Below are positions 26,030 to 57,999 of a stretch of DNA of 64,000 nt, piece after piece. The notes under the pieces were generated by a model. The model did not search any database. It worked only from the letters and a program-made list of their open reading frames with translations, and was not told the DNA's origin. Position numbers and translations under genes: made by a program. The stretch lies in sequence record NC_061445.1; one strand, written 5' to 3'. Position 1 is the first letter of the stretch. Each line of letters begins with the position of its first letter.

Positions 26030-27793
26030 TTAGAACGCCTTACGCTCAACATTTGAATAAAGTGTATCGTAAGGTTCAGAGTACAGTTCAGGTCCGCGTT
26101 GTGCGCGAATCGTCACGTAACCTGTATGACGGTTAAACGCTGTGATTTCGACTGTAGGCTGTTTAGGCTTGATAGTCGCATAAATCGGAGCATTCAGTGT
26201 AGGCTCGTCTGTCTGAATCTTATTTACAGATTGCAGAGCAGCACCCGAAACAGTCGGCAGATTGAAACGCAGTTCAGCACGTTTCTGACCGAACGCAGCG
26301 CGAATCATACCACGCTCCATCTCTACGCCATTCTGTTTGAGGTATGCAGCAATGCGACGAGCAATACCGGTCAACTGGTCACGAGTACGAGGGTCGAATG
26401 TACCTTCGAAACTGATTGCTTCCGGCGGCTGACGCACGGACAGATGCAGACCAGTGTTGAAGTAACCCTCAGTCAGAAGACGCAGCACTTCTTTTACGAC
26501 TTCTTGCGTGTTTGGTTTGATTGCAGCGATGCGCAGCTCAGGCACATCTACTTTGACCGGGTCGCGCAGCTCAGTTTGGTTATCCATGTAACCGAGAGAC
26601 ACATGCTTTGCGTTTGCATACGTGTGCTGCAATACGCCAGTAGCACGAATCAGGACAGAGCCGCCTTTAGCAATGTCGTAGAGTTCGTCGCTAGTGGTTG
26701 TGCTGAACAGGTAGTAGTCTGTAGGCACTGCCATGCGATTAACCGCTTCGACTGCTTTGGTCTGTACTTCTTTTACAGTTTTACCGAAGACTATACGACT
26801 ACGGTTAGGCTGAGAAGCAGACACAGGGAAGAATGCGCCGTAAACAACTTCGACGTTCTTCTTGATAGGACGCTCAGATGGAACCTTAGTGCCACCAGAC
26901 AGAGGAGGCAGCTTCACGCCCACCAGCTTGCCTTTGACGATAGCTTTGTTTTCTTTGACAGGCTTGAGGCCGTCAATCACTTTCGCCAGATCAGCACCGC
27001 TAAGAATCTTCTCCAGCGGAACAGCGAGGTTCTGCGGCAAATAGTGTTTCTTGCGATACGAGTAGATTACGGTGTCTTTCTTGATCTGAATAGGCGTTGC
27101 CATATTGCGACCAATAACACCGACCGGCTGGAACGTGTTTGCTTTGTCGTCAGCGATTGTGCCATAAGCCTTCGTGAACTCAGTCTGGCCGATGATGTTC
27201 GCAGCACGTAAGTGACCACGAATGATAAACACAATCTTCGGTTCGTCTTTCAGGCGCAGCTCGTAGCGGTCACGGTTCAGGTAAACCATGCTGTACTTGT
27301 CGCCTTTCTCCAGTTCGAGATCGTACTCATCGTTAGCGTCATCGACAACGACTTTCTTACCCTGATACGTAGAGTAGGTGCGAGCGCCCGCAGACTCAGA
27401 AGCAATCTCCAGTGCCTTGCCCGTATTAGACAGCGCAACTGCGAAGTCCATAACGGCGGGCATCAGGTCGAACGAAGATGCTACTGCATACGGTTTGCGT
27501 TTCGGACCGAGCTGAACGTGTACGGCACTGCTGCTGGACATGAACACGGTATTGCCTGTGTCTTCATGAGTACCAGCGAAGTGCATACCGCTAATGCGCT
27601 CGATGATGTTCGCGTTGAGTGAAGGGAATGCAATATCGCTACCGGCAGTGAAGTCATAAATTTCACCGTTGCGCCATGCGTATGCGACATTGTTCGAACT
27701 AAGACCTACAAACGCATCACCCAGCTGGCGAATCGTCAGCGGCATAATGCTTAGGTCACGAATGACTCTGTGTTGCTTTTGAATGAGGTTCAT
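26030..27793 (-). CDS. Hypothetical, probably internal-head protein with an SH3-like paralogous domain (587 aa)
   Basis: Long ORF; internal ASES followed by TYSTYQG...LEKGDKY...RYELRL...IVF. Confidence 0.75.
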   Translation of the reverse strand: MNLIQKQHRVIRDLSIMPLTIRQLGDAFVGLSSNNVAYAWRNGEIYDFTAGSDIAFPSLNANIIERISGMHFAGTHEDTGNTVFMSSSSAVHVQLGPKRKPYAVASSFDLMPAVMDFAVALSNTGKALEIASESAGARTYSTYQGKKVVVDDANDEYDLELEKGDKYSMVYLNRDRYELRLKDEPKIVFIIRGHLRAANIIGQTEFTKAYGTIADDKANTFQPVGVIGRNMATPIQIKKDTVIYSYRKKHYLPQNLAVPLEKILSGADLAKVIDGLKPVKENKAIVKGKLVGVKLPPLSGGTKVPSERPIKKNVEVVYGAFFPVSASQPNRSRIVFGKTVKEVQTKAVEAVNRMAVPTDYYLFSTTTSDELYDIAKGGSVLIRATGVLQHTYANAKHVSLGYMDNQTELRDPVKVDVPELRIAAIKPNTQEVVKEVLRLLTEGYFNTGLHLSVRQPPEAISFEGTFDPRTRDQLTGIARRIAAYLKQNGVEMERGMIRAAFGQKRAELRFNLPTVSGAALQSVNKIQTDEPTLNAPIYATIKPKQPTVEITAFNRHTGYVTIRAQRGPELYSEPYDTLYSNVERKAF

Positions 27794-27801
27794 ATAAATC
27801 C

Positions 27802-28236
27802 CTAATACGAAACGAGGCGGAATGCGTTCTGCTTGAGCAGGTTGAGATTACCGAGCATCAGGCTATAAGCCATAGTGCCGTATTGCTCGATCAGACTATC
27901 AGGCACAATAGACCCGAAGTAAAGAGCTTTATCTGGTCGAGTGTTAATCTCTTCCCCTACGGACTTCGCCTCATTTGGTACGACGAAGCACCATGGTTCA
28001 GCAACGTATTTACCCTTTACGTACTGAATCCTATAACCAACAGCGATGTGCTGGCCTTTGGTAGGACGGTACGAGAAAACATCCGTGTTCTGGTTGCGTG
28101 ACTTGCGCACAGCAAACAATGCCATAGTGAGAAAGCGCTGTTCAAACTGCGGGATGAACGCGTTGTCTTCGCAAATCTTTTTCAGTACCGCCTCTTGTCG
28201 CGCTTTTGGTAGCGACGAGTAGAGGTTTAAGTTCAT
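27802..28236 (-). CDS. Hypothetical protein (144 aa)
   Basis: ORF coupled to tmk by an ATGA overlap. Confidence 0.7.
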   Translation of the reverse strand: MNLNLYSSLPKARQEAVLKKICEDNAFIPQFEQRFLTMALFAVRKSRNQNTDVFSYRPTKGQHIAVGYRIQYVKGKYVAEPWCFVVPNEAKSVGEEINTRPDKALYFGSIVPDSLIEQYGTMAYSLMLGNLNLLKQNAFRLVSY

Positions 28237-28838
28237 GGCAGTCGCGCGAGAATTTGACGAACAACATCAGATACCGAATTAACCTCAGTATCAATAACCA
28301 AATCAAAGCCGCCAGGGACTTCGAGATAGCGTTGATTGTATTGCTCAAACACTTCTTTGGTCTGACGCTTTTCAATGCGGTCTTCACCGCCGATGCGCAG
28401 CTTGCGGCGTTCGACAGACGTTTCATACGTACAGGTCAACAGCACGGTCAAACGCTTCTCAGGAGCGAGTGCTTCCCAAGTGTGGCGATAGATGTGCGCG
28501 TTGATTTCAGACTCACCGGCCTGATAAACGTAAGTCGATGGATAGCCGCGATCAGAAATGATGATAGTGTCTGGCTCATCTGCGAGAATGCGGTCATAAG
28601 CATTCATCGTGGAAGAACGCGCTGCGAGGAACAGCATCAGCTCGGTGCGCGGGTCCATACCTTCGTTGAGACTGTTATCATTAGACAACAGAACATCACG
28701 GATATGCTCGGCAAGAGGTGTGCCGCCCGGCTCGCGCAATCGCAGAACTTTGTGCCCACGTTGAGACAGAATTTCTGACAGAGCATTACAGACGGTTGAT
28801 TTACCGCCACCTTCAGGGCCTTCGATTAAGAGGTTCAT
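28233..28838 (-). CDS. tmk: Thymidylate (dTMP) kinase
   Basis: P-loop IEGPEGGGKST, REPGGT, ELMLFLAAR and ISDRG motifs. Confidence 0.92.
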   Translation of the reverse strand: MNLLIEGPEGGGKSTVCNALSEILSQRGHKVLRLREPGGTPLAEHIRDVLLSNDNSLNEGMDPRTELMLFLAARSSTMNAYDRILADEPDTIIISDRGYPSTYVYQAGESEINAHIYRHTWEALAPEKRLTVLLTCTYETSVERRKLRIGGEDRIEKRQTKEVFEQYNQRYLEVPGGFDLVIDTEVNSVSDVVRQILARLP

Positions 28839-28847
28839 AGTGATTCC

Positions 28848-29339
28848 TTAGGCGAATCGCCCACCTCGCCATGCGGCTTTGATGAGCAATTTTGCCACGA
28901 TTTCGTTCTTCATTGTCTTTCGCTTGGCGTTGCTTTTGACAGATGCAGAGCCGAACTTATTCACGACAATCAGACCACAACCGAGTTCTTTAATTCGGGC
29001 TATGATGCGTTCACCGTGCGATTCAAACAGGCGCTCGTCAATGATGAAGTACATGCGCATACAGAAAGGCAAATACTTATGCCACTTCTTATCGGTATTG
29101 AAGTCTGCCCAGCAACTCTTTACCTCAGTGATAATCATATCGCATTTGGTATTCAGGCAGAACACGTCAGCCCGTAAGTTACCGTGCTTAATCAGTCCGA
29201 GTTCGACGTGGCACGAATAGCGTTTGTCAATCCAGTAGCGTTGTGCAGCTTCGGTAAGAAAGGCCGTCTTATCAGGACGGCTCATTGACTTGAAAACGGC
29301 GGTTCGAACAGGTTCAGCTTTGCGCCTACTATAAGCCAT
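28848..29339 (-). CDS. MmcB-like PD-(D/E)xK nuclease family protein (163 aa)
   Basis: RADVF...IITEVKSCWADF.TD.KW..Y...C..MYF pattern. Confidence 0.75.
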   Translation of the reverse strand: MAYSRRKAEPVRTAVFKSMSRPDKTAFLTEAAQRYWIDKRYSCHVELGLIKHGNLRADVFCLNTKCDMIITEVKSCWADFNTDKKWHKYLPFCMRMYFIIDERLFESHGERIIARIKELGCGLIVVNKFGSASVKSNAKRKTMKNEIVAKLLIKAAWRGGRFA

Positions 29340-29787
29340 ACGAGTCGATAATGTCCAGGGCTTGCTCTACGATAGGTCGAAGTTTCTTATCGACTTTGCG
29401 CAGTGCTTTATCCGCTTTGAACCACTTGCGTTCACGCGTCATGGCTTCGTCGTACTCGGTCAGCATAGTCTTGACCTTCATGACGTACCATTCAACGTGT
29501 TGCTCGCGGCCGGTCTTGCCTTTAACATACTTCATGATATCCACGAAGTCTTTCGGCTTACCGAGAACACCAGCTTCTTCCATAGCTTCTTTCAGCGCAC
29601 TGTCAAGTGCAGTCATTCCCTTCTCAACGCCGCCTTTGGGTAGTCCCCAGTTTCCGGCGTGAGTTGTGCGAATCAGCAGAATCTCTACTGAACCGTCACG
29701 TTTCTTTCTGTATGGGATAACGCCTGACTGCTTGCGAGGTTTCTTCTCGCTAGGCAGCTTGGCGGACAATGACACTTTGATCATCAT
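29329..29787 (-). CDS. NUDIX hydrolase (152 aa)
   Basis: Nudix box WGLPKGGVEKGMTALDSALKEAMEEAG. Confidence 0.92.
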   Translation of the reverse strand: MMIKVSLSAKLPSEKKPRKQSGVIPYRKKRDGSVEILLIRTTHAGNWGLPKGGVEKGMTALDSALKEAMEEAGVLGKPKDFVDIMKYVKGKTGREQHVEWYVMKVKTMLTEYDEAMTRERKWFKADKALRKVDKKLRPIVEQALDIIDSYGL

Positions 29788-30287
29788 AATGGTTCGAGTC
29801 CCCGTGGCAGATCAACATCCCATGAACCGGCATTGTCTTTCCACAGGCCTTCATTCTGCAACACTTGGTACGCTTCGTACAGTGTCGCGCGTGACAGCAC
29901 GGAAAGTTCGTTAATGCCAGCAGCGCCCAGATCGTAGCAGTAGCTACAGCCGGGGAAGTATTGACGACGAGCAGCCTCATACGTGTCAAACACGATGCGA
30001 CCTTCTTCGTCTGCTACAACTGCATGAGATGCCATGACGCCTTGACCCAGAACCACAATCTGATAGTTAGGGTGTTTGTTGTAGACACGTTGGATAAAGT
30101 AAGCAGCATCTGCAAACGGACGTGCCACCTGTGCGGCGCGATGACAGTTTTGCTCGACGGCGGATTCTGCGAGAGCGCGAGCGCCAGTCAAGTTCATAGC
30201 TGAGGCAAAGATAAGTGTGGTGAGCGCATGTGGCTCTACAGCAGTGGGGAAGAACTTCGTGCCCCACGCTTGTGATAACGAAAGCAT
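29784..30287 (-). CDS. Hypothetical protein (167 aa)
   Basis: AGGAG RBS; ATGA coupling to NUDIX. Confidence 0.7.
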   Translation of the reverse strand: MLSLSQAWGTKFFPTAVEPHALTTLIFASAMNLTGARALAESAVEQNCHRAAQVARPFADAAYFIQRVYNKHPNYQIVVLGQGVMASHAVVADEEGRIVFDTYEAARRQYFPGCSYCYDLGAAGINELSVLSRATLYEAYQVLQNEGLWKDNAGSWDVDLPRGLEPL

Positions 30288-30316
30288 GGACGTCTCCTTA
30301 TACGATAGTCTCAGCT

Positions 30317-40321: not shown

Positions 40322-40996
40322 TTAGTCCTCTACAATAATAAGCACAGGTCTAACTGCATCATCGAACTTGAGGAACGTAGCGCCAACCAAATAGCCGCCA
40401 TTCTCTACCTGTTTGACAACAGCTTTCTCCAGCTCTGTCTCCCACTTGTCACGCTGGTTGGCTTTATAGCCTTCAAACGTTTCAGTCGCGTCATAGTAGT
40501 TATAGGTTCCACCAGTCGGCATAGGGATACGTGCGAGGAACTGCAATCGACCAGCGTTCTTAAACTTAGTCTTGTGCAGTGCTTGAGTCAGCTTAGTGTC
40601 TTCGGCTTTAGAGCCAGGGACAGCTTTGAAGATCTTCTTCGGTTGTGGTTCTTTCGGTGCGGCAGGAAGTTTCTCACGCGCTGGCGTATTCTTATCAGTC
40701 GCTTTCTTCACGCGTATGCCTGACACAGTGCCAGTAAACGGACGACTACGCCCGAGCAGCGAACGTGCAGTAGCAGCATCGACTTCAAACACTACTGACG
40801 GATCATCCTTATGCAGCACATAGAACTTATTGCGCTTCGCAGCCTTGATACCGAACACATCTTTTTCTTCGATATCGGCTTCGTGCTCTTTGTTCTCAAT
40901 GCTAACTCTGCGCTTACCTTCGAAGCGATACCAGTCGCAATCTTGAATCGCAATGTCTGGTAGTTTACGTGCGCTTTCGCTCAGTAGAATAAGCAT
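40322..40996 (-). CDS. Hypothetical, probably internal-head protein with an SH3-like paralogous domain (224 aa)
   Basis: N-terminal LLSES, then DWYRFEG...DVFGI...FYVL...VVFEV. Confidence 0.7.
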   Translation of the reverse strand: MLILLSESARKLPDIAIQDCDWYRFEGKRRVSIENKEHEADIEEKDVFGIKAAKRNKFYVLHKDDPSVVFEVDAATARSLLGRSRPFTGTVSGIRVKKATDKNTPAREKLPAAPKEPQPKKIFKAVPGSKAEDTKLTQALHKTKFKNAGRLQFLARIPMPTGGTYNYYDATETFEGYKANQRDKWETELEKAVVKQVENGGYLVGATFLKFDDAVRPVLIIVED

Positions 40997-44413: not shown

Positions 44414-44806
44414 TTAGTCGTCAAGTCGTAAGCGAATCAATGTTGAAGGGGCAGAGGATTCAGAATCAACTTCGTCCTCTTGCTCGTCTTCTAATTCGTC
44501 TTCAACTTCATCATCAGAGTTCAGGCTGATAACTTCGTCGTCGTGTAACGGCTCGGCTACTTCTTCCTCGGCGTTAAGCTCTAAAGCAGCAGACAGCGCG
44601 GCAACGGATTCGCCCATCCCAGAAGCGTTACTCACCGAGTTAACAAGGCACGAAGCCTCGAAGTTATCAGCGAGTTCGCATTCGAGGAAGTCCTCAGTGT
44701 CTGGTGCTACAGAAGCCTGCGCAAGCAAGCGAGCAGCATCAACCCACTGTCCTTCACGCGCTGCGATGATTGCCAGTGCAGCTAAGGAACCAGTCAAAGT
44801 CTTCAT
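44414..44806 (-). CDS. Small acidic head-associated protein (130 aa)
   Basis: GAGG RBS; acidic C-terminus with S-x-S motifs. Confidence 0.7.
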   Translation of the reverse strand: MKTLTGSLAALAIIAAREGQWVDAARLLAQASVAPDTEDFLECELADNFEASCLVNSVSNASGMGESVAALSAALELNAEEEVAEPLHDDEVISLNSDDEVEDELEDEQEDEVDSESSAPSTLIRLRLDD

Positions 44807-44858: not shown

Positions 44859-45956
44859 TTATCCGCGTACTGCTTTCGCAACGGAACGCACGTTCGCCAG
44901 AGTGAAGGAGAAGGTGCTTGACAGCAACCAGCCGCGGTCGGTGTTACCCATGTTCGCGCCGGAAGTCGGGGTAGACTGGGTACCGCCACGAGTGGTGTAC
45001 ACTGCGTGGTAGTCCTGGTCTGCCAGAACGTACAGCTCACCGTCGTGCAGCACACGGTGCTCTGGAGCGCGGAAGCCGTCAGTTACCAGCTCCATACCCA
45101 GCAGAGTACCCAGACGGCCGGTAGTGATCAGGTCATACTTAGACACAGGGTCCAGAGCAGAGGTGAACTGATCGTTACCAACGATATCGTTCCAGTAGTC
45201 CTGCGCCATCACAGCGGTGCTAACAGGCAGCGGCCAGCTTGACACAGAATTTTTCAGAGTAGACAGCAGACGCGGAGTCAGGTCACCGTGAACCCAGGTG
45301 ATTGGGTTAGCGATACCAACTGCCTGGTCACAAGCAGTTTTCCACAGACGGTCTTCTGCAACCATGATAGATTGCAGGCCATCTTGCTGCGCGCGGTCCA
45401 GCAGGTCGCCGTTGATCTGATCCAGATCCATTTTGCTAACACGGATGTTGGATTTCAGTTCGAACTCAGCAGGCGTGTAAACACGACCGCGGAATTGACG
45501 GTAACCGTAGTCGGTAGGACCGGTTGCGATGATAGCTTCTGCCTGGTGGATTTTCAGTTCGATACGAGCGATATCGCCTTGACGAACGGTAGCACCTTTA
45601 CAGACCTTGCGCAGCAGGCCGGCACGTTCAGCACGGTCTTCGATAGATGCAACGATAGATGCACCCAGAGAAGCCCACTTCTGACCGCTGCCGTCAGCGA
45701 TAGCTTCCTGGAACAGTTCGATCTTCTCAGCTTCGGACAGGCCGTTGTCGCTAGAGACAGAGTGAACCAGTTCACCGGTTTGGAAGCTGTTCATCAGCTT
45801 GCTGATTTGTCCCAGCAGGTCTTTTTGGCTTGATGCGTTAATCTCACCAGTAGATGAGGACAACGCCAGCTCGCCTTTACCGCCGAAACGCAGGTCTTCG
45901 ATAGGGGCGCCAGAACGCAGGGTTACTTTCGCGCCGCGCATTACAGAATTGTTCAT
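44859..45956 (-). CDS. Major capsid protein (HK97-fold, 365 aa precursor)
   Basis: Size, strongly biased codons, position after scaffold and decoration genes; TPAEFELKSNIRVSKMDL..AEDRLW and GRLGTLLG. Confidence 0.85.
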   Translation of the reverse strand: MNNSVMRGAKVTLRSGAPIEDLRFGGKGELALSSSTGEINASSQKDLLGQISKLMNSFQTGELVHSVSSDNGLSEAEKIELFQEAIADGSGQKWASLGASIVASIEDRAERAGLLRKVCKGATVRQGDIARIELKIHQAEAIIATGPTDYGYRQFRGRVYTPAEFELKSNIRVSKMDLDQINGDLLDRAQQDGLQSIMVAEDRLWKTACDQAVGIANPITWVHGDLTPRLLSTLKNSVSSWPLPVSTAVMAQDYWNDIVGNDQFTSALDPVSKYDLITTGRLGTLLGMELVTDGFRAPEHRVLHDGELYVLADQDYHAVYTTRGGTQSTPTSGANMGNTDRGWLLSSTFSFTLANVRSVAKAVRG

Positions 45957-46778: not shown

Positions 46779-48818
46779 TTACTTGCAGCGCAGGCGAGCG
46801 AGTTTATCTTCGAACGATGAGTCAGTGGAAGCTGAACTCTGGGATTCAACGGTTTCTTCTTCCTGAGACAGGAGCTGTGCAGCAGACGGCTGTGCTTTAG
46901 GAGCAACAGCAGGAGCTTGCTGAACAACGTTGGCACGAGCAGCGGTAACAGTACCAGCAGCCGCGTCGATAGACTCAGAAATTTCGTTCTGTGCCACTTC
47001 GGACTTGGACATCAAGTCGTTAGCTTTGGACAGAGCGACAGTAAGGAAGTCCTTACCGTGAGCGATGAACGCTTGCTCAATCAGAGCGCGTGGGTCTTTG
47101 ATACCGGCCGCAGTGAGCGAGCGGGACAGAGAATCCACGATTGGGTTGCTTGCATCGCCCCAGAAGTTTTTGGTGATACCCAACTGAGCAGCAGACAGAG
47201 CAGCAACGAAACGTTCGCTGTGTGCAGCGGTCGCTTCTTCGATAGTTGCTGTGACGTTCGCAGTAGCTTCGCTAATACGAGTGTCAGATTCTGCCACCAG
47301 CAGTTTATCTACCGGCATTTCGATCTGATACGGCATAAAGCCGAATGCTTCACAAGTGCCGGTCACGCCTGTCTGATTCAGAGAGTGTGATACTGCACGG
47401 ATGAAATTATCAGATTCGAAACTTTTCGCTGCGTTTTCTTCGCCAACAGCACCAGATACAGAGGCGAACGTTGCGCGAGCGATTGGCTGGCCATCGTAGT
47501 ACATGTGTACTGCGGCGACTTTACCAGTTGAGCGGCTCAGGCTGACCAGTGAAGGGTCGAGCGTACCGTGCTGCGCCTGTGCAGTAGACAGGCTATTGAA
47601 GACGCGATTAACGACCTTGCTCTCAGAGTCAAACTCGTCTTCTTCGTCGTCGAGATCCAGGTCATCTTCTTCCAGATCGTCTTCGTCGTCGAGGTCTTCG
47701 TCGTCATCTGAGCTAGACTCGGAATCGAAGTCATCTTCTTCAAGATCATCTTCTTCCAAGTCTTCGTCGTCGAGGTCGTCTTCTTCAAGATCGTCCTCTT
47801 CGTCTTCCTCGTCGTCAGAGCTGGATTCAGAGTCAAACTCATCATCTTCCAGATCTTCCATGTCTTCGTCGTCGAGGTCGTCTTCGTCCAGATCTTCGTC
47901 GTCGAGGTCTTCCTCGTCGTCGATATCATCGTCTTCGTCATCGTTAGATGATTCAGAATCGAAGTCGTCATCTTCCTCGTCGTCGTCCATATCTTCGAGG
48001 TCGTCTTCTTCAACGATATCAATATCGCTATCGTCGCCAGACGTTGACGCTTCTACTGGTTCGTCAACCAGCGCAGCAGAGCAATGTGCGCAGAACACAG
48101 GCTCTTCGTCGGAGCTTACAGTGAACGGCTGGTCGCATTTAGCGGAGCAGCTATACATGTGAGCTTCAACTTCACCGTTAGTCGCGGCAGAAGACAGCGC
48201 GGTAACAGCTTCAGGAGATTCCTGAGGTTCGCAACTATCAACAGCCTGGCCGGTGTACGGGTCGAAGTTTGCAGCAACAGCAGCATTAAAGCTACCAGTG
48301 CTAGACACGGCGGTAAACGCGTGTGCGTTGCTCAGTGCCTGTGCGAAGTTGCGTTGAGCTTCTTCGGCGGTAGCGCCTGTAGCAACCAGACCAGCGTGTT
48401 CAACTTGCTCGTCCGCAGCAGCGGATTCAGCCAGGAACTGAGTAACACGCTCGTCGGTGATTTCAGACAGGTCAGCAGAGCACGATGGGCAGCAGCCCTG
48501 TACCAGAGCAGAGCTATCAGAGATAACGTGGCTACCACAACCATCAAGACAGATGGTGTAATGAGCTTTCACATCACCAGCAGAAGACTGCGACTGGACT
48601 TCGGCGCGCTCAACCAAATCAGGATGCTCTTCCAGCAGCTCATTGCCGCCTTTCGGATTGTAGAGGTCAGCGCCACTCTGCGAAGCAAAGCCTACACCGT
48701 CAGAGGACCCGAAAATCATCAGGTTCTGTCCGAGTGCAGTACGGCGAAAGTTCTCTACTGCCTGATTATGGTTTTTACCGACACACAGGATACCCGCGAG
48801 TTGGGTAATCTTTGGCAT
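46779..48818 (-). CDS. Prohead core/scaffold-like protein with CxxC motifs and a very acidic central tract (~679 aa)
   Basis: Between the protease and capsid genes; D/E tract of about 150 aa; CxxC clusters. The RBS favours MPKIT (48818). Confidence 0.7.
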   Translation of the reverse strand: MPKITQLAGILCVGKNHNQAVENFRRTALGQNLMIFGSSDGVGFASQSGADLYNPKGGNELLEEHPDLVERAEVQSQSSAGDVKAHYTICLDGCGSHVISDSSALVQGCCPSCSADLSEITDERVTQFLAESAAADEQVEHAGLVATGATAEEAQRNFAQALSNAHAFTAVSSTGSFNAAVAANFDPYTGQAVDSCEPQESPEAVTALSSAATNGEVEAHMYSCSAKCDQPFTVSSDEEPVFCAHCSAALVDEPVEASTSGDDSDIDIVEEDDLEDMDDDEEDDDFDSESSNDDEDDDIDDEEDLDDEDLDEDDLDDEDMEDLEDDEFDSESSSDDEEDEEDDLEEDDLDDEDLEEDDLEEDDFDSESSSDDDEDLDDEDDLEEDDLDLDDEEDEFDSESKVVNRVFNSLSTAQAQHGTLDPSLVSLSRSTGKVAAVHMYYDGQPIARATFASVSGAVGEENAAKSFESDNFIRAVSHSLNQTGVTGTCEAFGFMPYQIEMPVDKLLVAESDTRISEATANVTATIEEATAAHSERFVAALSAAQLGITKNFWGDASNPIVDSLSRSLTAAGIKDPRALIEQAFIAHGKDFLTVALSKANDLMSKSEVAQNEISESIDAAAGTVTAARANVVQQAPAVAPKAQPSAAQLLSQEEETVESQSSASTDSSFEDKLARLRCK
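47615..48010 (-). repeat. Coding low-complexity repeat (GAC/GAT/GAA codons) with four FDSES units
   Basis: Direct reading of the sequence and translation. Confidence 0.85.
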
Positions 48819-48896: not shown

Positions 48897-50039
48897 TTAA
48901 ATTTTTCTGCTATCAATGTCAGCTTGTGGAATATAGCGATTTTCGAAGTATTTCGAGACAACTTCTACGCCATTTAAGGTGTATACGTTGCGTAAACTAT
49001 ATCCCCAAACCATCAGTTCTGCGAGCGTTGCGAAGTGCTCCGTAGGGACCGTTTTAATGGTACGTGCGGTCAGAGAATCTGGGTGGATTTTCTTGCCGCG
49101 AATGGCCTGATCGAACTTCATACGGTCTACGTTACGCAGCATCGTATCGTCCACAAAGTGGGCTAATTCGTGCGTAATAACGTGTGCCATACTCAGGCTA
49201 TTATACCCACCAAGCAACTGTACTAACTGCGCTGGATGGATTGAAATCGCACCATACAGGAAGCCATGCACACGGTACGTAGCGATATGACTACCACCAC
49301 TATCCGAGTTAGCTTTCAGAACGCCAACATACAGACGGTCGAAGGGCAGTGCAATGTTCAGGCCAACGCCGGGCATCACGTTTTCCTGAATGTCTTTGAG
49401 CACATAATCAGGAGGACTGACGCCATTCTTTTCGAACGATATCCCCGGCACACGCAGCTCATCCATACCTTTAACTTCAAGGTGGACTCTACCACATTTC
49501 TTAACAGGCTTGACAGCGTAGTTATTTGGTGTGCCGCCTGGGTAAACAGCAGAGGCATAACGCAGCGCTTTCATGTTGCCGAAATCGACTTCACCTAAAC
49601 GCTGAACCTGACGTGCTTTCATGCTGTCAGTTGTATCGTCATCACCTGCAACAGGCATTGGTGGGAGTTTATCGAGGGGTACGTTGACTTTCGAAGGAGG
49701 CAGAGGTTCTGGCGCAGGCTTCTTGACAACGGTAGGCTTAGCCTTTGGTTTAGACGCTTTCTTTTCTTCTTCGTAAGGCGTGAAGTTGAAGTCAGGCTTA
49801 AACAGCGCGTCAGGCTTCGCAGTGAATGGCCGGCTGGTGGTAGCAATCATGTCACCATCAACGCCACTGATCGCAGCAGCACGATCATATTTAGGGTGAG
49901 CTATGTAGTACAGGTCGCTATTGACTTGAAGCAGACCCACGACCTCACGCGGCTGCATACGAATGCCGTTTGAGATCATGGTGTCGTTACCCAGATAGCG
50001 ATAGTACGAATAGTCTAAGATAGATAGACCTTCCGCCAT
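48897..50039 (-). CDS. Zinc-metallopeptidase-like protein (HELAH...EHFA) with an N-terminal SH3-like domain (380 aa)
   Basis: HExxH motif plus a downstream E-x-F-A zincin-like motif. Confidence 0.65.
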   Translation of the reverse strand: MAEGLSILDYSYYRYLGNDTMISNGIRMQPREVVGLLQVNSDLYYIAHPKYDRAAAISGVDGDMIATTSRPFTAKPDALFKPDFNFTPYEEEKKASKPKAKPTVVKKPAPEPLPPSKVNVPLDKLPPMPVAGDDDTTDSMKARQVQRLGEVDFGNMKALRYASAVYPGGTPNNYAVKPVKKCGRVHLEVKGMDELRVPGISFEKNGVSPPDYVLKDIQENVMPGVGLNIALPFDRLYVGVLKANSDSGGSHIATYRVHGFLYGAISIHPAQLVQLLGGYNSLSMAHVITHELAHFVDDTMLRNVDRMKFDQAIRGKKIHPDSLTARTIKTVPTEHFATLAELMVWGYSLRNVYTLNGVEVVSKYFENRYIPQADIDSRKI

Positions 50040-50040: not shown

Positions 50041-50820
50041 TTACGCCATCCTTAACAGGTGCTCTTTGTAGGTTGCGGCACATGCGAATGCCGGGTCGTC
50101 TACGCTACTGCACTCAAAGCCTGTCAGGAGTTTGCAGTCACGATAGACCAGACGCCCTGTACGTGCATCGAGATACGTAGGCTTGTTGAACGCTGTATGC
50201 GAACAGAAGTTACGCGCACGAGGTGTTACCAACTGACCACAGATACTGCATTTATATGCACGGTAGGTTGTGCCTTTGCTGTACGTGTTCAGTTCACCGC
50301 TCATGATTCGGTCGCAGCGCTCTTTGCAGCGTGTACGGTCGAATGCAAGCAGCAACGTCAGACGTGCGTGGTCGCCACGGAAGTTCTTGAGCTTCGACAG
50401 GTTAGAGTCAAAGATCATGCCCATAGCTTGACGGTAGTCTTTGTTGTTGTGCTCGATGAACGTCGGCTTACCGATGAACGTCTGATACGCAAGGCGTCCT
50501 TGGTCAGGGTTGAACGTCAACCATTCTTGCAGACTAAACGCATCACCGTTCGTGTTCGGAAGTTCTGTGATGTTCACAGGAACAGGCACGATGATATAGT
50601 CGCGGATATCGCGTGACGTGTTGTACTGCTCGGCAGCTTTAGGCAACCACACGTTCACGTCGAGGTTAAAAGAGCCAGTCTGAATACCGAAACGCGAAGC
50701 ATCCACACGAATAGACTTAGCTGTTTTGCTAACGTCTTCCTTGTGAAGGTCAATCGCGTTCAGTCCGACTAAGCCCATGTCCGAGGTATCAAACGACTCG
50801 GAACGAATGGACTGATCCAT
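50041..50820 (-). CDS. Prohead maturation protease (HK97/herpes-type fold with a Zn-ribbon insert; ~259 aa)
   Basis: PNTNGDAF, IEHN (His), YSKG (Ser), CSICG, FECSSVDDPA. The start was moved to MDQSI (GGAG RBS). Confidence 0.75.
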   Translation of the reverse strand: MDQSIRSESFDTSDMGLVGLNAIDLHKEDVSKTAKSIRVDASRFGIQTGSFNLDVNVWLPKAAEQYNTSRDIRDYIIVPVPVNITELPNTNGDAFSLQEWLTFNPDQGRLAYQTFIGKPTFIEHNNKDYRQAMGMIFDSNLSKLKNFRGDHARLTLLLAFDRTRCKERCDRIMSGELNTYSKGTTYRAYKCSICGQLVTPRARNFCSHTAFNKPTYLDARTGRLVYRDCKLLTGFECSSVDDPAFACAATYKEHLLRMA

Positions 50821-51242: not shown

Positions 51243-52028
51243 TTAACCTCTCAGTGCACCACGCGCCCATGACTTAGCCAACGCAAGAGTCATACGTGCA
51301 GGGTTATGCAGTTTGACTTCCCCTTTGTGGACAGCGGTGAAAGGCTCGTGTGCGTTCTGACCGCGACCAGAGCGATAGGCAGCTTCGTTGAAACCATCGA
51401 ACAGGGTAACTACCCAGCCCGTAGATTTCTCAGAGCACTCACCACATGCTTTATCCCACACAATCTTACCGCACACACGGCCACCAGCATTGACTGCATA
51501 GCTGATTTGCTCAGTGCCTTTGTAGACGTCTTGGGACTTGAGTGTCTTAAACGTCACACGGGAAGACGACTCGGAGCGTGGCACCATCTTCTCTTTCATC
51601 GACTCGATATCAAGCGATGACCAGAAAGACTCAAACAGCGCGGCAAACTTCTGCTCAATAGGCAGGTCTACCGCGTTGATTTGTGCAATGGTGCTGGAGC
51701 TATCAGCGAGCACACGGTTGAGGAAGTAGCCACCGAGAATAACAGGCATCTGTGTGCCTTGCGTTCCGGTAGTTAAGCCAGACTTCTTGCAGTAGATTTC
51801 TGACAGGCCGACAGCAAGACGCGCAAGAGTCATGAACGTTTGCTTCTCGGTGCTGCCAGCAACCTCTGTGTAGATACGCGCAGCAATAGCAGGTACGACA
51901 GTGCGCTTTGCCACGCTCAGGATATCTTCTGGCTTAATCTCTTGCCCCAGCTTCTTCTTCGCAGCCAGTTCGAATGCGTTAATCAGGCTGGCTTTGTTCG
52001 CTGGTGTCAGAGACTCGCTCAACTTCAT
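51243..52028 (-). CDS. Hypothetical protein (~261 aa; start uncertain: 52028, 52124 or 52160)
   Basis: Long ORF; the MKLSES start minimises overlap with the glycosyltransferase. Confidence 0.65.
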   Translation of the reverse strand: MKLSESLTPANKASLINAFELAAKKKLGQEIKPEDILSVAKRTVVPAIAARIYTEVAGSTEKQTFMTLARLAVGLSEIYCKKSGLTTGTQGTQMPVILGGYFLNRVLADSSSTIAQINAVDLPIEQKFAALFESFWSSLDIESMKEKMVPRSESSSRVTFKTLKSQDVYKGTEQISYAVNAGGRVCGKIVWDKACGECSEKSTGWVVTLFDGFNEAAYRSGRGQNAHEPFTAVHKGEVKLHNPARMTLALAKSWARGALRG

Positions 52029-54169: not shown

Positions 54170-56112
54170 TCCAGTTTGTATTTGCTCTTGAACTCCGCGA
54201 TACTCATAACAGGGATGCCTTTGTCCATCGCTTTCTGGAGTTTCGCAGAACCAGATCCAGGGTCTTTAGCAATCAGGATTGTCGTGTCAGCTTTCATGCT
54301 GTCAGTCGCAACGCCGCCGAGTTCAGTGATACGCTGCATCAGGTCGCGGTCACGCACACCAGTGAATGCCACGTTGACGCCTTTGAGCTTGCTGCTGGTG
54401 ACTTTCACTTTCTTCGGTGCAACGAGCGTCACATCCATTTCGACTGCCATGAGATAGGACTTAACAGCAGCATCAGCAATCTGCGGAGCCAGCTTGTCTA
54501 CCCCGTGCATACCGCTAATCTTGAGAGTCAGATCAGCAGTCTTACCTTTCTTGAGATATTGCTCAAGGTTAGGAATGGCATCAACAACCTTGTCGAATGT
54601 CGTGTTAGCGCCGCGCATGAAGAATGACGCAGTAGCTTTAAGCCACGTATTCATCGGCACGCCAGCTTTCAACGTCTTCAGGTCTTTCGCTAACTGACGA
54701 CCGCGAGAGTCACCAACGATTTCACGCAGTGATGCCATAGGCGTCATGAACAATTGTTGAGGCGTTTTAATGCCAGAAGCAACGAGCAACTTACAGGTGC
54801 TTGGACCTGTGTTCGCAATATCAAGTCCGCGCAGGAACGAACCGAGAAGACGAGCATCAGCAACAGAGGACTTCGCTTTGACAACGAACTCTACACCGTT
54901 AATCTTGTACGGTACGTCAGGCAGCTTAGGCTTCTTAGCAGGCTTGAGAATCTCCATGATGTATGGGATTACCTTGCCACTTCGAATCAACTTAACCTTA
55001 GCGCCAATGCCTAACGGTCGTTTAGGACCAAGCACTGCACCTTTCTTCTTCGGCTTGAGATAGCCGTGCTCAACGTAGAAACCGTTGTGCGCAGAAGCAC
55101 GTTCAACAGTCACACCGCCGGGCATGATTGTTGGCGGGAAGATTGCAACAGGCGCGAGCACACCGTACTTCGACTCTTGGTAGATAACGTCTTTGACAGT
55201 CACAATAACCGTGTCAGACTCAACGTTCATTTTGAACTTGAACGCGTGACGTGGGTTACTGGCAGTTGCTTTAGGCGTAGGAATATCACGGGTCATTACG
55301 ATCCCATCAAGTTCATACTTCGCCTTAGCAATACGTTTGTCCAACCACGGGATGAGTTGTTCTTCGTCATCAAAACGCAGAGGACCGAAGTGACGAACGA
55401 CTTCGAATCCCCATTTGTCTAACAGCTTGAACTGACTGGACTGCTTGAGAGTAGCACCTTTACCAGCAAGTATGCCGAAGCACACCATGTGGACGTACTT
55501 GAACTCTTTCGCAGTCTCGAAGTTACGGACCAACCCTGACGCAGCGTTACGCGCAGCTTTGAAGCGACCACCAGCAGACTCATGCAGCTTTGCCATGAAC
55601 GTCTTATACGGGATAAGCGCCTCACAGCGAAGCACCACTTCACCCTTCTCAGGAATCTTTTGGGGGATGCGCATCGAAGGTAAGTGCTGAGACACGTCTT
55701 TGCCGTGAGTAGCGTCACCACGAGTATACGCTTTGACAGGCACGCCTTTCTGGTACACGATCTCAATACTCAGACCGTCCAGCTTATCTGTCAGCATCCA
55801 CTCAACGTCTTCTGCAAGAGCTTTGGACAATTGTTTGCCGCCGAGAGCATACTGGTCAAGACTTGCCATTGGTACAGGCAGCTTAACATCAGAATCATCA
55901 CGCGCACCAATCTTACGCGCCAGCTTTGACTTAGGCCAGCGTGTGTCGATGTAGTTACGAATGTGATCATACACTGCATCTGATACAAGACCTTCAGAAT
56001 CAGTGTGGAACGCATCATCAAGATGCGCCACAAGTTTCGTTGCCTGAGTCAGATTGAGCGTGTCGAGAACCTTGTTAGGATTCTTCTCTAATCGCTTCAA
56101 AGAGATTTGCAT
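54166..56112 (-). CDS. ligA: NAD+-dependent DNA ligase (648 aa)
   Basis: KLDG adenylation motif, YTRGD, RNAASG, YELDGIV, AFKFK, OB fold, C-terminal BRCT (VAFTG..KLQKA...GI). Confidence 0.95.
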   Translation of the reverse strand: MQISLKRLEKNPNKVLDTLNLTQATKLVAHLDDAFHTDSEGLVSDAVYDHIRNYIDTRWPKSKLARKIGARDDSDVKLPVPMASLDQYALGGKQLSKALAEDVEWMLTDKLDGLSIEIVYQKGVPVKAYTRGDATHGKDVSQHLPSMRIPQKIPEKGEVVLRCEALIPYKTFMAKLHESAGGRFKAARNAASGLVRNFETAKEFKYVHMVCFGILAGKGATLKQSSQFKLLDKWGFEVVRHFGPLRFDDEEQLIPWLDKRIAKAKYELDGIVMTRDIPTPKATASNPRHAFKFKMNVESDTVIVTVKDVIYQESKYGVLAPVAIFPPTIMPGGVTVERASAHNGFYVEHGYLKPKKKGAVLGPKRPLGIGAKVKLIRSGKVIPYIMEILKPAKKPKLPDVPYKINGVEFVVKAKSSVADARLLGSFLRGLDIANTGPSTCKLLVASGIKTPQQLFMTPMASLREIVGDSRGRQLAKDLKTLKAGVPMNTWLKATASFFMRGANTTFDKVVDAIPNLEQYLKKGKTADLTLKISGMHGVDKLAPQIADAAVKSYLMAVEMDVTLVAPKKVKVTSSKLKGVNVAFTGVRDRDLMQRITELGGVATDSMKADTTILIAKDPGSGSAKLQKAMDKGIPVMSIAEFKSKYKLE

Positions 56113-56151
56113 GATTTTCTCCGATCGTCATTAACACTGGTATTTACAGCA

Positions 56152-57999
56152 TTAAGAGGCGATTGGGTCCTTGTTAACAGGGAAGTCTTCGGTCATGTCG
56201 AGCACACGATTGAACAGCTTCGGTGCCATGTCCTTGACGTGTTCTGCGTAGTCAAACAGGTTCTGCTTACGCGCACGGTTCACACGCACCTGACGAACTT
56301 CATCTGGGCTGTTCGTGATATCGTACACTGTGTAGATAACGATGTTATCTGAGGCAGAGTGCGTACTGACCTTCAATACCACCCAGTCGCGTTTGAGTTT
56401 CGCATCTGCTCTGAATTGCAGCACGTCACCTTCTTCTGCTTCCTCGGCGCGATGCTGAGGAGTAGACTTGTTAGCGGCAGCAATCTTCTTCGCAGTCTCA
56501 CGCGCTTCCTTCTCGGCAGCAGCAACGTCAGAGTCGGTATCTTCTTCGGCAGAGGTTTCATCTACCGCATCGGCGGCATCAGCATCCTCGTCCTCTGAGT
56601 CGCCATCTTCACCTTCATCGTCAGTTGTTCCGTCGTCAGACTCGGCATCATCCACAGATCCATCGTCTTCGGAATCGTCTTCCCCATCTTCTGCATCATC
56701 AGCACCTGTATCGCTATCGTCAGTGTCTTCTTCTGCATCTGGGTCTTCCTCTTCTTCGGGATCGACTTCTTCTTCGCCGTCAGTATCTTCCTCTTCAGGT
56801 TGAGGTGCAGGCTTCTTGCCTTTAGCGCGAACTTTAGGTGGCGGAGCGTCTTCTTCGTCGTCATCAGGCTCGTCAATGTCTGACAGGTCGAGTGCAGGTT
56901 CTTCATGGTCAGCAGAGTCATCGCCACCAAACAGAGAGCCTACAGAATCTTCGATGTTAAACACATCGCCTGAGAACGGACTACGTGCGAGAATGTCTTC
57001 CAGCTTCTGCTCGTCGAGGTCAAGATCGATTTCGACTTCTTCGATTGCGTCGTCCAGAATTTCTTCTTCAATGACACGCATACGCTTGCCACGTCTGTCC
57101 GTATTGTCCTCATAGACAGTACGCACTTCGGCTTTAGGAGCTTCAATTTCACCGCTACGCACTTTCGAGCGCAGGTCTTTCATCTCGGCAGCACGTTCCT
57201 GAGCTTTCTTACGCGCTTCTTTCTGGAGTTCTTTGCGTTGTTGCTTCTGCTCCAGAACCTTAGCGTTGTTAGCGAGGCGTTGAGCTTCTTCCTCTTCTGC
57301 CTGACTGCGACGACGAGCACGGCGTACTAACTTGCGATAGTTTTTGAGCGTGTCAACATCGACAGTACCTTTCGGCCAATCATTGAAAGGCAGGATGTTT
57401 GTATCATGCACAATCAGATCGTACTGCGCGTCATCAACTTTCAGGAACAGACCGTCAGTGTTAATGACAACACCGCCTTTACCTGGGCGTAAGAAACGAA
57501 CACCAATCATGTCGTTCTTGTAGAGCTTCGTCATACCCTTTGAAGTCTTCACTGGGTATTCAGAGCTTGCCACCATGCGCCACTGGTAGTTATCGAAGTC
57601 AACACCGTATACGGCTTCTGACTTGACTTTACGCGGTGAGAATCTCGCAGCATCGAACTGCACACGGTTCAGTTGTCGCTGCATCGTTTGAGCACCGGCA
57701 ACCTTTGTGCGCTTACCATCACGATTAACGACGTCAGGTACTTTACGCAGCTTCGACGCACGTTCCATCAAGAATAGGCCAGTGGCTTTATCAAGAGGGA
57801 AGTCAACGTGAGGCATATCTGGGAAAATAAGAGTGTAGCGACCGCCATTACGCAGCGGGAGAATACCGAAGATATCTCCGTCACGAATCATGCGCTTATG
57901 AGTTCGTTGGGATACTTCTTTTCCGCGTGAGCCTGTGTACTTCATCCACGCGTACTTCGATACGGCATCTTGATATGATGCGGATACGGAAAGTATCAT
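56152..57999 (-). CDS. Acidic, probably internal-head protein with two SH3-like paralogous domains (~615 aa)
   Basis: The track start is 58026; MILSVS is the likelier start. Long D/E tract and a coiled coil. Confidence 0.7.
   Translation of the reverse strand: MILSVSASYQDAVSKYAWMKYTGSRGKEVSQRTHKRMIRDGDIFGILPLRNGGRYTLIFPDMPHVDFPLDKATGLFLMERASKLRKVPDVVNRDGKRTKVAGAQTMQRQLNRVQFDAARFSPRKVKSEAVYGVDFDNYQWRMVASSEYPVKTSKGMTKLYKNDMIGVRFLRPGKGGVVINTDGLFLKVDDAQYDLIVHDTNILPFNDWPKGTVDVDTLKNYRKLVRRARRRSQAEEEEAQRLANNAKVLEQKQQRKELQKEARKKAQERAAEMKDLRSKVRSGEIEAPKAEVRTVYEDNTDRRGKRMRVIEEEILDDAIEEVEIDLDLDEQKLEDILARSPFSGDVFNIEDSVGSLFGGDDSADHEEPALDLSDIDEPDDDEEDAPPPKVRAKGKKPAPQPEEEDTDGEEEVDPEEEEDPDAEEDTDDSDTGADDAEDGEDDSEDDGSVDDAESDDGTTDDEGEDGDSEDEDADAADAVDETSAEEDTDSDVAAAEKEARETAKKIAAANKSTPQHRAEEAEEGDVLQFRADAKLKRDWVVLKVSTHSASDNIVIYTVYDITNSPDEVRQVRVNRARKQNLFDYAEHVKDMAPKLFNRVLDMTEDFPVNKDPIAS

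Follow-up and report, generated by a model that had tools for sequence, protein, structure and literature searches.

Head genes of the window and their S-x-S sites

The window is a stretch of 64,000 nucleotides from Erwinia phage pEa_SNUABM_3 (Alexandravirus, a giant or jumbo phage of 266 kb; record NC_061445.1, 62001-126000). It contains a head module in which the protease gp145 lies together with gp144, the scaffold-like gp143, gp142, the major capsid protein (MCP) gp141 and gp140, and this gene order is kept in Y3, Yoloswag, JA11, Lu11 and RSL1. Features are collected in Table 1. The original prediction held that a hydrophobic-x-S-x-S motif (hxSxS) is a protease cleavage site which doubles as a capsid-targeting leader; all the strings it listed are present in annotated proteins.

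Table 1. Genes and motif sites considered in this work (window coordinates)
Feature	Position	Strand	Remarks
LEIASES, internal site of gp118 (587 aa), residues 128-134	27392..27412	-	gene 26030-27793; conservation
MMIKVSLS, leader of NUDIX hydrolase gp122	29764..29787	-	gene 29329-29787
MLSLS, start of gp123 (167 aa)	30273..30287	-	leader status doubtful
MLILLSES, leader of gp135 (224 aa)	40973..40996	-	gene 40322-40996
Small acidic gp140 (130 aa), beside MCP	44414..44806	-	VNSVS 44630-44644 (residues 55-59); VDSES 44456-44470 (residues 113-117)
GELVHSVS, MCP gp141 residues 61-68	45753..45776	-	proposed pro-piece boundary; conservation and model
Scaffold-like acidic gp143 (679 aa, annotated 'ATPase')	46779..48818	-	15 hxSxS sites
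gp144, KMPT-N and HExxH zincin-like metallopeptidase	48897..50039	-	directly downstream of head protease; PF20294 at 212-275; HELAH motif
Head maturation protease gp145 (259 aa)	50041..50820	-	PHROG 18299; gp21/assemblin-like fold (model)
MDQSIRSES, N-terminus of gp145	50794..50820	-	S-E-S ends at residue 9; conservation
MKLSES, annotated start of gp147 (261 aa)	52011..52028	-	not supported as leader
MILSVSAS, leader of gp151 (615 aa)	57976..57999	-	gene 56152-57999

Genome-wide, hxSxS occurs 202 times against 138-140 expected from composition-preserving shuffles (z ~6), and an hxXxX excess of similar size is seen for no other residue. The bias of residue context around SxS is only weak, so most single occurrences are indistinguishable from background. 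The motif as first defined is too loose. Three sub-signals lie far beyond chance: a much sharper pattern at protein N-termini, the density of sites in the scaffold, and the conservation of the serine pair in orthologs.

A sequence-only PDB search with gp145 gave no match. Its AlphaFold model (pLDDT 78.4) finds T4 gp21 as the best PDB match (5JBL; Foldseek E 9e-3, probability 0.94; VIA-align Z 9.6, 2.9 A, 140/165 residues), followed among specific VIA-align matches by herpesvirus assemblins with Z 4.8-5.8, a range also reached by unrelated MCE-domain proteins. As judged from this model, gp145 has the T4 gp21 fold. At the sequence level, the candidate catalytic residues H124 and S181 show no variation among 22 homologs and stand 57 residues apart, a spacing near that of other family members. 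The N-terminus of the protease bears the motif as well: relatives keep h-x-S-x-S-F-[DSG] with SES, SAS, SRS, SHS, SKS, SQS, STS or SLS as the core, and Lu11-like proteases read h-A-x-G-F or S-x-A-F. T4 gp21 has, in its own sequence, a cleavage logo whose last residue is 9 (LIE-9; PMC9026906), where gp145 has SES-9.

VHSVS occupies residues 64-68 of the MCP. Both S66 and S68 persist in four lineages (Alexandra-, Y3-, Yoloswag- and SNUABM_5-like), with V, T, H, Q or E between them. By its model, the MCP resembles prohead and head structures of HK97 as well as encapsulins (E ~1e-9, ~270-300 columns); residues 1-66 form a separate piece in the model, and residues 67-72 (pLDDT <50) separate this piece from the N-arm helix of the HK97 fold. 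The N-terminal segment ahead of the fold would be dispensable. By calculation, a cut after S68 would remove 18.0% of the MCP mass. The MCP of PaBG loses ~20% of its mass on maturation (PMC7412058), from which removal of the pro-piece may be expected here too. S-E-S is displaced by about two residues in JA-type MCPs, and the PaBG MCP has no clear site.

The scaffold-like gp143 carries 15 hxSxS against 3.0 expected (z 7.5), including FDSES at 286, 328, 364 and 396. FASQS at 44, VQSQS at 74, FASVS at 451, VESQS at 657 and VEASTS occur in it as well. The four FDSES fall within a repetitive acidic stretch and are not independent. Every ortholog in the S-x-S clades shows this excess, with 15-20 sites against 2.4-4.6 expected (z 7-10); most distant clades (Lu11-, PaBG- and RSL1-like) lack it. 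The site serines of gp143 are 84% conserved in far clades, compared with 47% for its other serines. In gp140, h-x-S-[VF]-S is found in all orthologs down to 43% identity, and the C-terminal [VI]-[ED]-S-[ED]-S is mostly conserved.

These proteins bear on the question of whether gp145, like T4 gp21 and the phiKZ/SPN3US proteases, still requires Glu at P1, in which case S-x-S would be an exosite, a structural or a phosphorylation-type feature and not the cut site. Glu occupies P1 in all gp21-family specificities determined so far (PMC9026906, PMC10052503), gp143 is very rich in Glu, and T4-type [LIV]-x-E is mildly enriched in it (z 2.0), so a Glu rule may yet apply to gp143. The phiKZ-type [SAG]-x-E is, however, depleted in this very acidic protein (11 against 22 expected, z -3.0). 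The MCP linker offers no conserved x-x-E candidate, for E62 can be replaced by N, D, Q, A or K, and L-S-E76 becomes L-T-D or L-T-N in near relatives, and the leader described below has no Glu beyond position 2. Glu at P1 is thus not what the sequences give at the MCP boundary, the leader ends or in gp143, and we consider its retention by gp145 quite unlikely. Ser-P1 specificity, as originally proposed, accords with the conserved serine of S-x-S, but in a relaxed form: P1 would be Ser with some small or Asn substitutions rather than strictly Ser.

An N-terminal leader on non-homologous proteins

Eleven of 339 proteins start with M-x(1-2)-[ILVM]-x-[VIL]-S-x-S, compared with 0.14-0.19 expected (P ~1e-17). 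The leader can also be written M-[EKQ]-[ILVM]-x-[VIL]-S-x-S, with the consensus octapeptide M-E-I-x-V-S-L-S. This pattern was drawn up post hoc but has independent confirmation from orthologs, which retain the leader down to 30-50% identity, with its two serines 94% conserved against 71-76% for the rest. At the leader serines, codons of the AGY and TCN types replace one another, and the DNA upstream is unrelated among leader genes, which indicates selection on the peptide. In relatives, the leader also heads proteins that have no homolog in pEa_SNUABM_3. Its register differs from that of most internal sites, with hydrophobic residues at P4 and P6 in the leader and at P5 in the sites. In gp221 orthologs, N is frequent at P1. 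Two of the bearers, gp233 and gp242, are located in a plus-strand block of replication or early appearance. A Sec signal peptide cleaved by signal peptidase I (-3, -1 small rule) was rejected as an explanation, the leader having 8 residues of which 3-4 are hydrophobic, and usually Glu at position 2, where a Sec signal calls for a positive n-region and at least 10 residues of hydrophobic core ahead of A-x-A.

Three of the eleven bearers lie inside the window (gp122, gp135 and gp151) and the other eight outside. In gp122 the leader is an N-terminal extension of a NUDIX domain beginning at residue 21. Orthologs keep M-[MK]-[IL]-x-V-S-L-S and JA-type ones read L-T-L-D; the PaBG homolog aligns from residue 16 only and misses the extension. 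Orthologs of gp135 read MLIFLSES, MLFFVSVS, MLFFISTS, MLLFISAS or MLPFFISVS, with both serines invariant and the middle residue free. Relatives of gp151 have MVLSVSAS or MVLSESAS, and the distant clades MIISLAAS, MIIAIAAA (Lu11-like) and MLMIAEA (PaBG). These three of the five leaders first proposed hold by ortholog conservation, and the other two do not. For gp147, close relatives read I/T-K-L-G-E-S, with I or T at the Met and G at the first Ser, and their ORF extends further upstream; the gp147 homologs of Yoloswag, SNUABM_5 and PaBG have an N-terminal extension, missing from pEa_SNUABM_3, that bears a canonical leader. For gp123, MLSLS is kept in close relatives only (one has MLSLD), and JA-type homologs begin MKTFPE, which makes a leader there doubtful.

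Chance or composition, whereby serine-rich or low-complexity sequence and repeat duplication yield the motif, has in its favour the mostly unremarkable loose matches, the FDSES repeats of gp143 and the failure of gp147 and gp123. For the core set it is already refuted by the N-terminal statistics, by codon-level variation that betrays selection on the peptide, and by a motif kept across genera with its serines preferentially conserved; we regard it as extremely improbable.

Bearers of the leader are unrelated to a large extent. BLAST among the eleven found no further homology except between gp135 and gp151, so a short N-terminal peptide is common to non-homologous proteins, as first noted; the claim needs the qualification that gp118, gp135 and gp151, together with gp144, share the KMPT-N domain (PF20294; Pfam bits 68.4, 74.1, 62.6 and 92.8, respectively, with a cut-off of 28.9). 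This domain spans residues 20-84 of gp135 and 16-80 of gp151. In gp118 it starts 6 residues after the internal IASES (130-134), the same layout as leader plus KMPT-N in the other two, and orthologs of gp118 keep [IV]-[AS]-S-x-S-A (x = E, T or Q) down to 42% identity. The S-x-S that ends the leader recurs in the MCP, the protease, the scaffold, gp140 and gp118, where it may likewise be a processing site.

One recognising factor or several

The octapeptide could be a real signal and still no substrate of gp145. Some other enzyme (gp144 or the peptidase gp214, for example) might recognise and remove it, or it might stay uncleaved as a docking strand for the scaffold, portal or ejection route; the S-x-S copies of the MCP, the protease and the scaffold would in that case be a distinct feature, or related to it in part only. 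A candidate is at hand in gp144, whose KMPT-N and HExxH zincin modules stand beside the head protease and whose orthologs occur in 27 of 48 related loci; it is a possible second processing enzyme. KMPT-N is present in three proteins bearing a leader or site, zincin domains of packaged polyvalent proteins have been proposed as autoprocessing enzymes (PMC5512222), and the register of the leader is unlike that of the internal sites. Against this, eight of the eleven leader proteins are devoid of KMPT-N, and the motif sits on the protease itself, which in some relatives begins with the literal leader MKKELSLSF. Moreover, in Lu11-like phages S-x-S becomes A-x-G at the protease N-terminus, A-T-A in the MCP linker and A-A-[SA] at the N-terminus of the gp151 family. 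In the more distant Lu11/PaBG-like clades the S-x-S positions as a group turn into A-x-A/G. That the protease N-terminus, the MCP linker and the leaders go from S to A in step speaks for a single recognising factor. We therefore see separate recognition as a minor, though realistic, possibility.

A possible model of head loading and cleavage

We suggest, with a probability of roughly 60%, that the S-x-S leader is a T4-style signal for loading into the head and subsequent cutting, which follows a different sequence rule. Head-interior proteins would carry the 8-residue leader M-[EKQ]-[ILVM]-x-[VI]-S-[LMIV]-S, an amphipathic, beta-strand-like peptide with hydrophobic residues at P6, P4 and P2 and Ser at P3 and P1, by which the cargo would dock on the scaffold or core of the assembling prohead. 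The gp21-fold protease gp145 would then recognise a [small]-x-[small] core, S-x-S in this clade, and cut at or just past it, thereby stripping the leaders from the cargo, 68 residues of pro-piece from the MCP and 9 residues from its own N-terminus. It would also cut the acidic gp143 and gp140 at many h-x-S-x-S sites, so that the fragments can exit the head. Sequences and models show the motif, where it lies, how it is conserved and covaries among clades, and the folds of protease and MCP, whereas docking and cleavage, with the precise bond cut and the enzyme that cuts it, are what we infer. Weighing against the model are the unlike registers of leader and internal sites, the frequent P1 Asn of gp221 orthologs, L-T-L-D in JA-type NUDIX proteins, the shifted or unclear MCP sites of JA-type phages and PaBG, the early-looking surroundings of gp233 and gp242, the mild [LIV]-x-E enrichment of gp143, the neighbouring peptidase gp144 as an alternative processing enzyme, and the post hoc definition of the leader pattern. 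The dual role originally assigned to the motif is retained in this model, carried by the serine pair at the MCP, the protease, the scaffold and eleven N-termini, by the clade shifts and by the gp21 fold; the loose form of the motif and two of the leaders are given up.

In the window, the model predicts as cargo gp122 (the NUDIX hydrolase), gp135 and gp151 (both with KMPT-N) and, of gp118, the C-terminal part; the rest of the genome would contribute gp189, gp193, gp195, gp207, gp208, gp221, gp233 and gp242. The 1948-aa SNF2-like gp178 is probably cargo too. Its PaBG ortholog (221 kDa, helicase-like) has LNSLS in the N-terminal region and was found as a virion protein band (PMC7412058). Another PaBG virion protein, gp83, starts MLIKINLL.

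Comparison with known systems

Taken together, the proposed system looks like T4 capsid targeting and cleavage in a form that apparently had not been described. Like the T4 CTS (IPI, IPII, IPIII and Alt; PMC9026906, PMC3012670), the leader is a short N-terminal peptide on otherwise unrelated, fast-evolving proteins, it ends in a motif found again at the MCP pro-piece and in the scaffold, and the protease fold is the same, cleavage and packaging being here predictions from sequence. The T4 rule is different, as gp21 cleaves at L/I-x-E with Glu at P1 and Leu or Ile at P3, whereas pEa_SNUABM_3 has Ser (small) at both positions. The T4 CTS has 10 or more residues instead of 8, and the T4 lineage is unrelated to Alexandravirus and the Lu11/PaBG/RSL1-related jumbo phages.

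The prohead proteases gp175 of phiKZ and gp245 of SPN3US are likewise jumbo-phage members of the gp21 family and process many head and ejection proteins, with the specificity S/A/G-x-E, V preferred at P4 and Ser at P1' (PMC10052503). Small P3 and hydrophobic P4 are as in V-S-x-S, and their propeptides have multiple sites; their P1 is Glu, in contrast to Ser (or A, G, N) in pEa_SNUABM_3. Most of these propeptides are long (111-254 residues), and a short leader shared among them is not known, while in pEa_SNUABM_3 a small MCP has a proposed pro-piece of 68 residues.

Herpesvirus assemblin, of the same fold superfamily as gp145, cleaves (V/L/I)-x-A / S, with a small P1 and a hydrophobic residue upstream as in the S-x-S leader. 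It differs in belonging to a eukaryotic virus, in having only two defined sites (M and R), and in serving no leader-tagged cargo set.

Finally, the predicted cargo, with its KMPT-N domains, zincin neighbour and giant SNF2-like protein, resembles packaged polyvalent or Dar-type proteins (DarB/DdrB of phage P1, vRNAP of N4), in keeping with zincin MPTase, SNF2 and KMPT-N modules being typical of proteins injected with DNA (PMC5512222). Polyvalent proteins combine such modules in one giant fusion, whereas in pEa_SNUABM_3 they are separate genes, each with a short leader, and the signal is defined at the sequence level.

A shared N-terminal octapeptide

We consider it very likely (probability about 0.9) that an N-terminal motif recurring in proteins of Erwinia phage pEa_SNUABM_3 is a functional signal. 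The window is identical to positions 62001-126000 of NC_061445.1 (genus Alexandravirus, genome 266,175 bp), and the minus strand carries every gene annotated in it. Statistics refer to the 339 annotated proteins of the whole record, and gene numbers are RefSeq locus-tag numbers.

The original prediction proposed a hydrophobic-x-S-x-S motif as a cleavage and targeting signal. All strings it quoted are found in their places, and the motif is truly in excess in the proteome (202 occurrences, compared with 138-140 after shuffling of each protein, z about 6), as is S-x-S itself (430 against 344); no comparable excess was found proteome-wide for any other residue put in place of serine. As a diagnostic pattern, however, it is too loose. 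Residues around S-x-S are weakly biased genome-wide (V and F at -2, V at -1), so a single occurrence means little despite the real excess, and the loose motif was dropped as a signal on its own.

Serine background had been named as a possible source of such sequences. S-x-S within the first 8-12 residues exceeds this background, with 17-21 proteins against 6-11 expected, and one octapeptide recurs among them (Table). Written as M-x(1-2)-[ILVM]-x-[VIL]-S-x-S, this leader fits 11 of the 339 N-termini, where 0.19 would be expected from shuffled N-terminal regions or 0.14 from its internal frequency (Poisson P about 1e-17). Because the pattern was written post hoc, with the data already seen, independent tests outweigh this value.

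A common domain could bring about common N-termini. In all-against-all BLAST of the leader proteins, the sole similarity is that of gp135 with gp151. Pfam finds KMPT-N (PF20294) in these two and in gp118 and gp144, NUDIX from residue 21 of gp122 and SNF2/helicase in gp178, with no match at gathering score in the remaining leader proteins. A common domain is thus ruled out save for KMPT-N in gp135 and gp151; the claim that unrelated genes start with the same signal stands for most of them, but not for this homologous pair. A DNA repeat or a shared translation-initiation cassette is ruled out as well. The DNA 5' of the start codons is unrelated between genes, and the two leader serines are encoded by AGT, AGC, TCA, TCC, TCT or TCG, varying by gene. 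The leader is therefore a signal at the peptide level.

Coordinates and N-termini of leader proteins and neighboring features
Feature	Coordinates	N-terminus	Remarks
gp189, gp207		MEIQVSLS	
gp193		MQIFVSLS	
gp195, gp233		MEIYVSLS	
gp208		MEIFVSLS	
gp242		MEMLVSLS	
gp221		MARIKISLS	
gp122 (NUDIX)	inside window	MMIKVSLS	
gp151	inside window	MILSVSAS	same register as octapeptide
gp135	inside window	MLILLSES	same register as octapeptide
gp143	window 46779-48818		annotated 'ATPase', PHROG 20988
gp144	window 48897-50039		'hypothetical protein'; KMPT-N (PF20294) and HExxH zincin-type metallopeptidase motif; directly downstream of head protease
gp147 family in relatives (homologs of window 51243-52028)	L034:8548, L037:8551, L067:29714		leader begins directly after stop codon
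NAD-dependent DNA ligase	window 54166-56112	MQISLKRL	
its pEa_SNUABM_5 homolog	L037:4622	MKVQLSLSAS	leader-like start
gp178 (SNF2/helicase-like, 1948 aa)	record 148786-154632, outside window	MMNQVISTS	
gp206	record 175313-175828, outside window	MELTVDLS	leader with Asp replacing first Ser
GCTAATTT	window, minus strand: 4672, 24739, 30324, 43306, 58040		further copies outside window
Stretch between gp117 and gp118	window 24708-26029		1.3 kb, no annotated gene

Conservation of the leader

Relatives were sampled from about 130 IMG/VR loci around the head module and in three further regions, together with annotated regions of Y3, Yoloswag, JA11, Lu11 and RSL1 and the complete PaBG. A related-locus search seeded with gp194 gave two loci, and PaBG orthologs were compared by two-sequence alignments. 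Since the leader expression gave many non-coding false matches on six-frame ORFs of relatives, only matches with an ATG start and a short upstream extension were kept.

Orthologs of all eleven leader proteins retain the leader, while identity in the remainder drops to 30-50%. For example, orthologs start with MKILISLS, MQVLISLS and MEILISLS (gp207), with MIVFISLS, MKVLISLS, MEILIALS and MHVLISLG (gp233) or with MLFFVSVS, MLFFISTS and MLLFISAS (gp135). On average, the two leader serines are 94% conserved, compared with 76% in the 20 residues that follow and 71% in the rest of the protein. Leaders are also present on proteins of relatives that have no homolog here (MKIFISLSAK in Y3, MELLISLSKP and MKVILSLSAV in JA11). 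The alignment of the PaBG NUDIX homolog to gp122 starts only at residue 16, showing the leader to be an added module. Two observations weaken the proposal: several gp221 orthologs have Asn at P1, and JA-type NUDIX orthologs depart from the pattern.

Among the five leaders originally predicted, those of gp122, gp135 and gp151 are retained in orthologs, whereas conservation speaks against gp147 and gp123. In close relatives, gp147 (MKLSES) has Ile or Thr for Met and Gly for the first Ser, and the ORF continues upstream; MLSLS of gp123 is retained among close relatives only. A further candidate, gp149 (MLSLPCTF), was rejected, its orthologs lacking S-x-S. Homologs of gp147 in Yoloswag, SNUABM_5 and PaBG carry canonical leaders (MKMLISLSQ, MLLSLSN, MLLSLSLA) on an N-terminal extension of about 70 residues that pEa_SNUABM_3 lacks. 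The Yoloswag and PaBG starts in this family appear to lie some 70-90 codons upstream of the public annotation. The N-terminus of gp206, whose homologs begin with MQILVSLS in JA11 and MEIVISFS in Yoloswag, could represent a degenerate leader or a variant one.

The S-x-S core at proposed positions of head maturation

Residues 61-68 of the major capsid protein (MCP, gp141) read G-E-L-V-H-S-V-S. The serine pair is kept across four lineages with V, T, H, Q or E in the middle, and E-V-S-E-S of the JA11 group lies some two residues further on. The AlphaFold model (pLDDT 76) consists of an N-terminal piece, a low-confidence linker (67-72), an N-arm helix and a fold that can be aligned with HK97 and encapsulin structures along roughly 270-300 columns. 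The computed mass loss for a cut after S68 is 18.0%. The homologous PaBG MCP loses about 20% on maturation (PMC7412058), a value that fixes no cut site, with several small-x-small candidates between residues 71 and 82.

The head protease gp145 starts with M-D-Q-S-I-R-S-E-S. Its relatives follow h-x-S-x-S-F with freely varying x residues, and some distant ones start with MKKELSLSF, which is the leader itself. T4 gp21, too, carries a cleavage logo of its own, which ends at residue 9 (PMC9026906). The acidic 130-aa protein gp140 keeps h-x-S-[VF]-S in all orthologs and mostly keeps a C-terminal site. In gp118, [IV]-[AS]-S-x-S-A lies six residues ahead of the KMPT-N domain, a layout mirroring leader plus KMPT-N in gp135 and gp151.

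A series of 15 sites, where 3.0 would be expected, lies in the scaffold-like gp143; the counts for its orthologs from S-x-S clades are 15-20, with an expectation of 2.4-4.6 (z 7-10). In far clades, serines inside sites are 84% conserved, the others 47%. The hydrophobic register differs between leaders and internal sites, which is a weak point of the proposal. No Pfam domain was found in gp143. Its N-terminal third contains two Cys-x2-Cys pairs resembling zinc ribbons, followed by an Asp/Glu-rich repeat block (about residues 270-400) and a C-terminal domain conserved out to RSL1. By position and composition, gp143 fits a scaffold rather than an ATPase.

Lu11-like phages change three positions jointly: the protease N-terminus (h-A-x-G-F or S-x-A-F), the MCP linker (h-A-T-A-S-S) and the gp151-family N-terminus (MIISLAAS or MIIAIAAA; MLMIAEA in PaBG). 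In RSL1-like phages, the MCP linker reads V-F-A-S-[SA] and the scaffold contains V-F-A-S-x-G. Most Lu11/PaBG/RSL1-type clades lack the S-x-S excess in the scaffold and show only a mild small-x-small excess there. Joint change of several substrates would be expected if a single factor reads them.

Proposed processing and packaging

We propose that the leader would dock cargo to the scaffold core, as in the capsid-targeting-sequence (CTS) system of T4, and that gp145 would cut at or after S-x-S, both scissile bond and enzyme being inferred. In this scheme, gp145 would trim the leaders and the MCP pro-piece as well as its own N-terminus, and would break gp143 and gp140 into fragments. On balance we favor this full mechanism, with some reserve. 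Pfam and PDB sequence searches with gp145, including a protease profile against PDB, gave no relevant match, and its relation to gp21 is seen by fold search only. The gp145 model is best aligned to T4 gp21 (Z 9.6, 2.9 A over 140 residues); herpesvirus assemblins score Z 4.8-5.8, a range also reached by unrelated MCE-domain proteins. H124 and S181 are invariant. As an alternative processing enzyme, gp144 may be considered, a KMPT-N/zincin peptidase adjoining gp145. A Glu rule, in turn, fits this phage poorly: the MCP boundary has no conserved x-x-E, the leaders have no late Glu, and [SAG]-x-E is depleted even in the acidic scaffold (11 versus 22 expected).

A candidate cargo protein is gp178. 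Its PaBG ortholog, with LNSLS in the N-terminal region, is the largest virion band (221 kDa). Matching of PaBG Table 1 proteins to gene calls was by molecular weight, reliable for the 221-kDa protein, gp083, gp081 and MCP only; gene numbers in that paper differ from RefSeq tags. The 221-kDa band is indirect evidence that leader proteins may be packaged. In addition, modules of the KMPT-N, zincin and SNF2 types are characteristic of polyvalent proteins that enter the host by injection (PMC5512222). The position of gp233 and gp242 in the plus-strand replication region counts against the proposal.

Of all phage proteins, those ejected from the head are the first that the host encounters, and counter-defence factors are frequent among them; to our knowledge, those of jumbo phages beyond the T4 and phiKZ groups are essentially unmapped. 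If our assumptions are true, proteins injected with DNA can be read straight from the genome, which would yield some twelve predicted packaged proteins per genome for testing. Here the set would include the NUDIX hydrolase, KMPT-N proteins, the very large SNF2-like protein and a number of small, charged proteins to which no function is assigned. The leader would also allow gene starts to be corrected, such as those of the gp147 family in Yoloswag and PaBG, and could load foreign proteins into heads of these phages. Erwinia, Dickeya, Yersinia and Pseudomonas jumbo phages of the group are in development against fire blight and soft rot.

Other observations

The genome holds 15 copies of GCTAATTT against 8 expected, 11 of them preceding a start on the same strand by 32-50 nt (gp101, gp117, the gp123-gp122 operon, tail sheath gp137, gp151, gp186, gp189, endolysin gp197, gp208, gp005 and gp250). 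It may serve as a late promoter element and is common to several leader and structural genes. In the stretch between gp117 and gp118, neither a tRNA nor an Rfam match was detected, and the ORFs on either strand are all short.

Comparison with known systems

In the papers examined on PaBG, T4, SPN3US and jumbo-phage genomics, we found neither the leader nor a Ser/small-P1 rule described. We see even odds that one lineage (Alexandra-, Y3-, Yoloswag- and JA11-like phages, with A-x-A/G variants in Lu11/PaBG-like ones) combines a gp21-fold protease, whose P1 preference moved from Glu to Ser or small residues, with a portable eight-residue packaging leader. This would widen the known specificity of gp21/assemblin proteases, and, like the T4 CTS, the leader could serve as a tag for packaging. 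The proposed rule differs mainly at P1 both from the T4 rule, L/I-x-E (PMC9026906), and from that of phiKZ and SPN3US, S/A/G-x-E with V preferred at P4 (PMC10052503).
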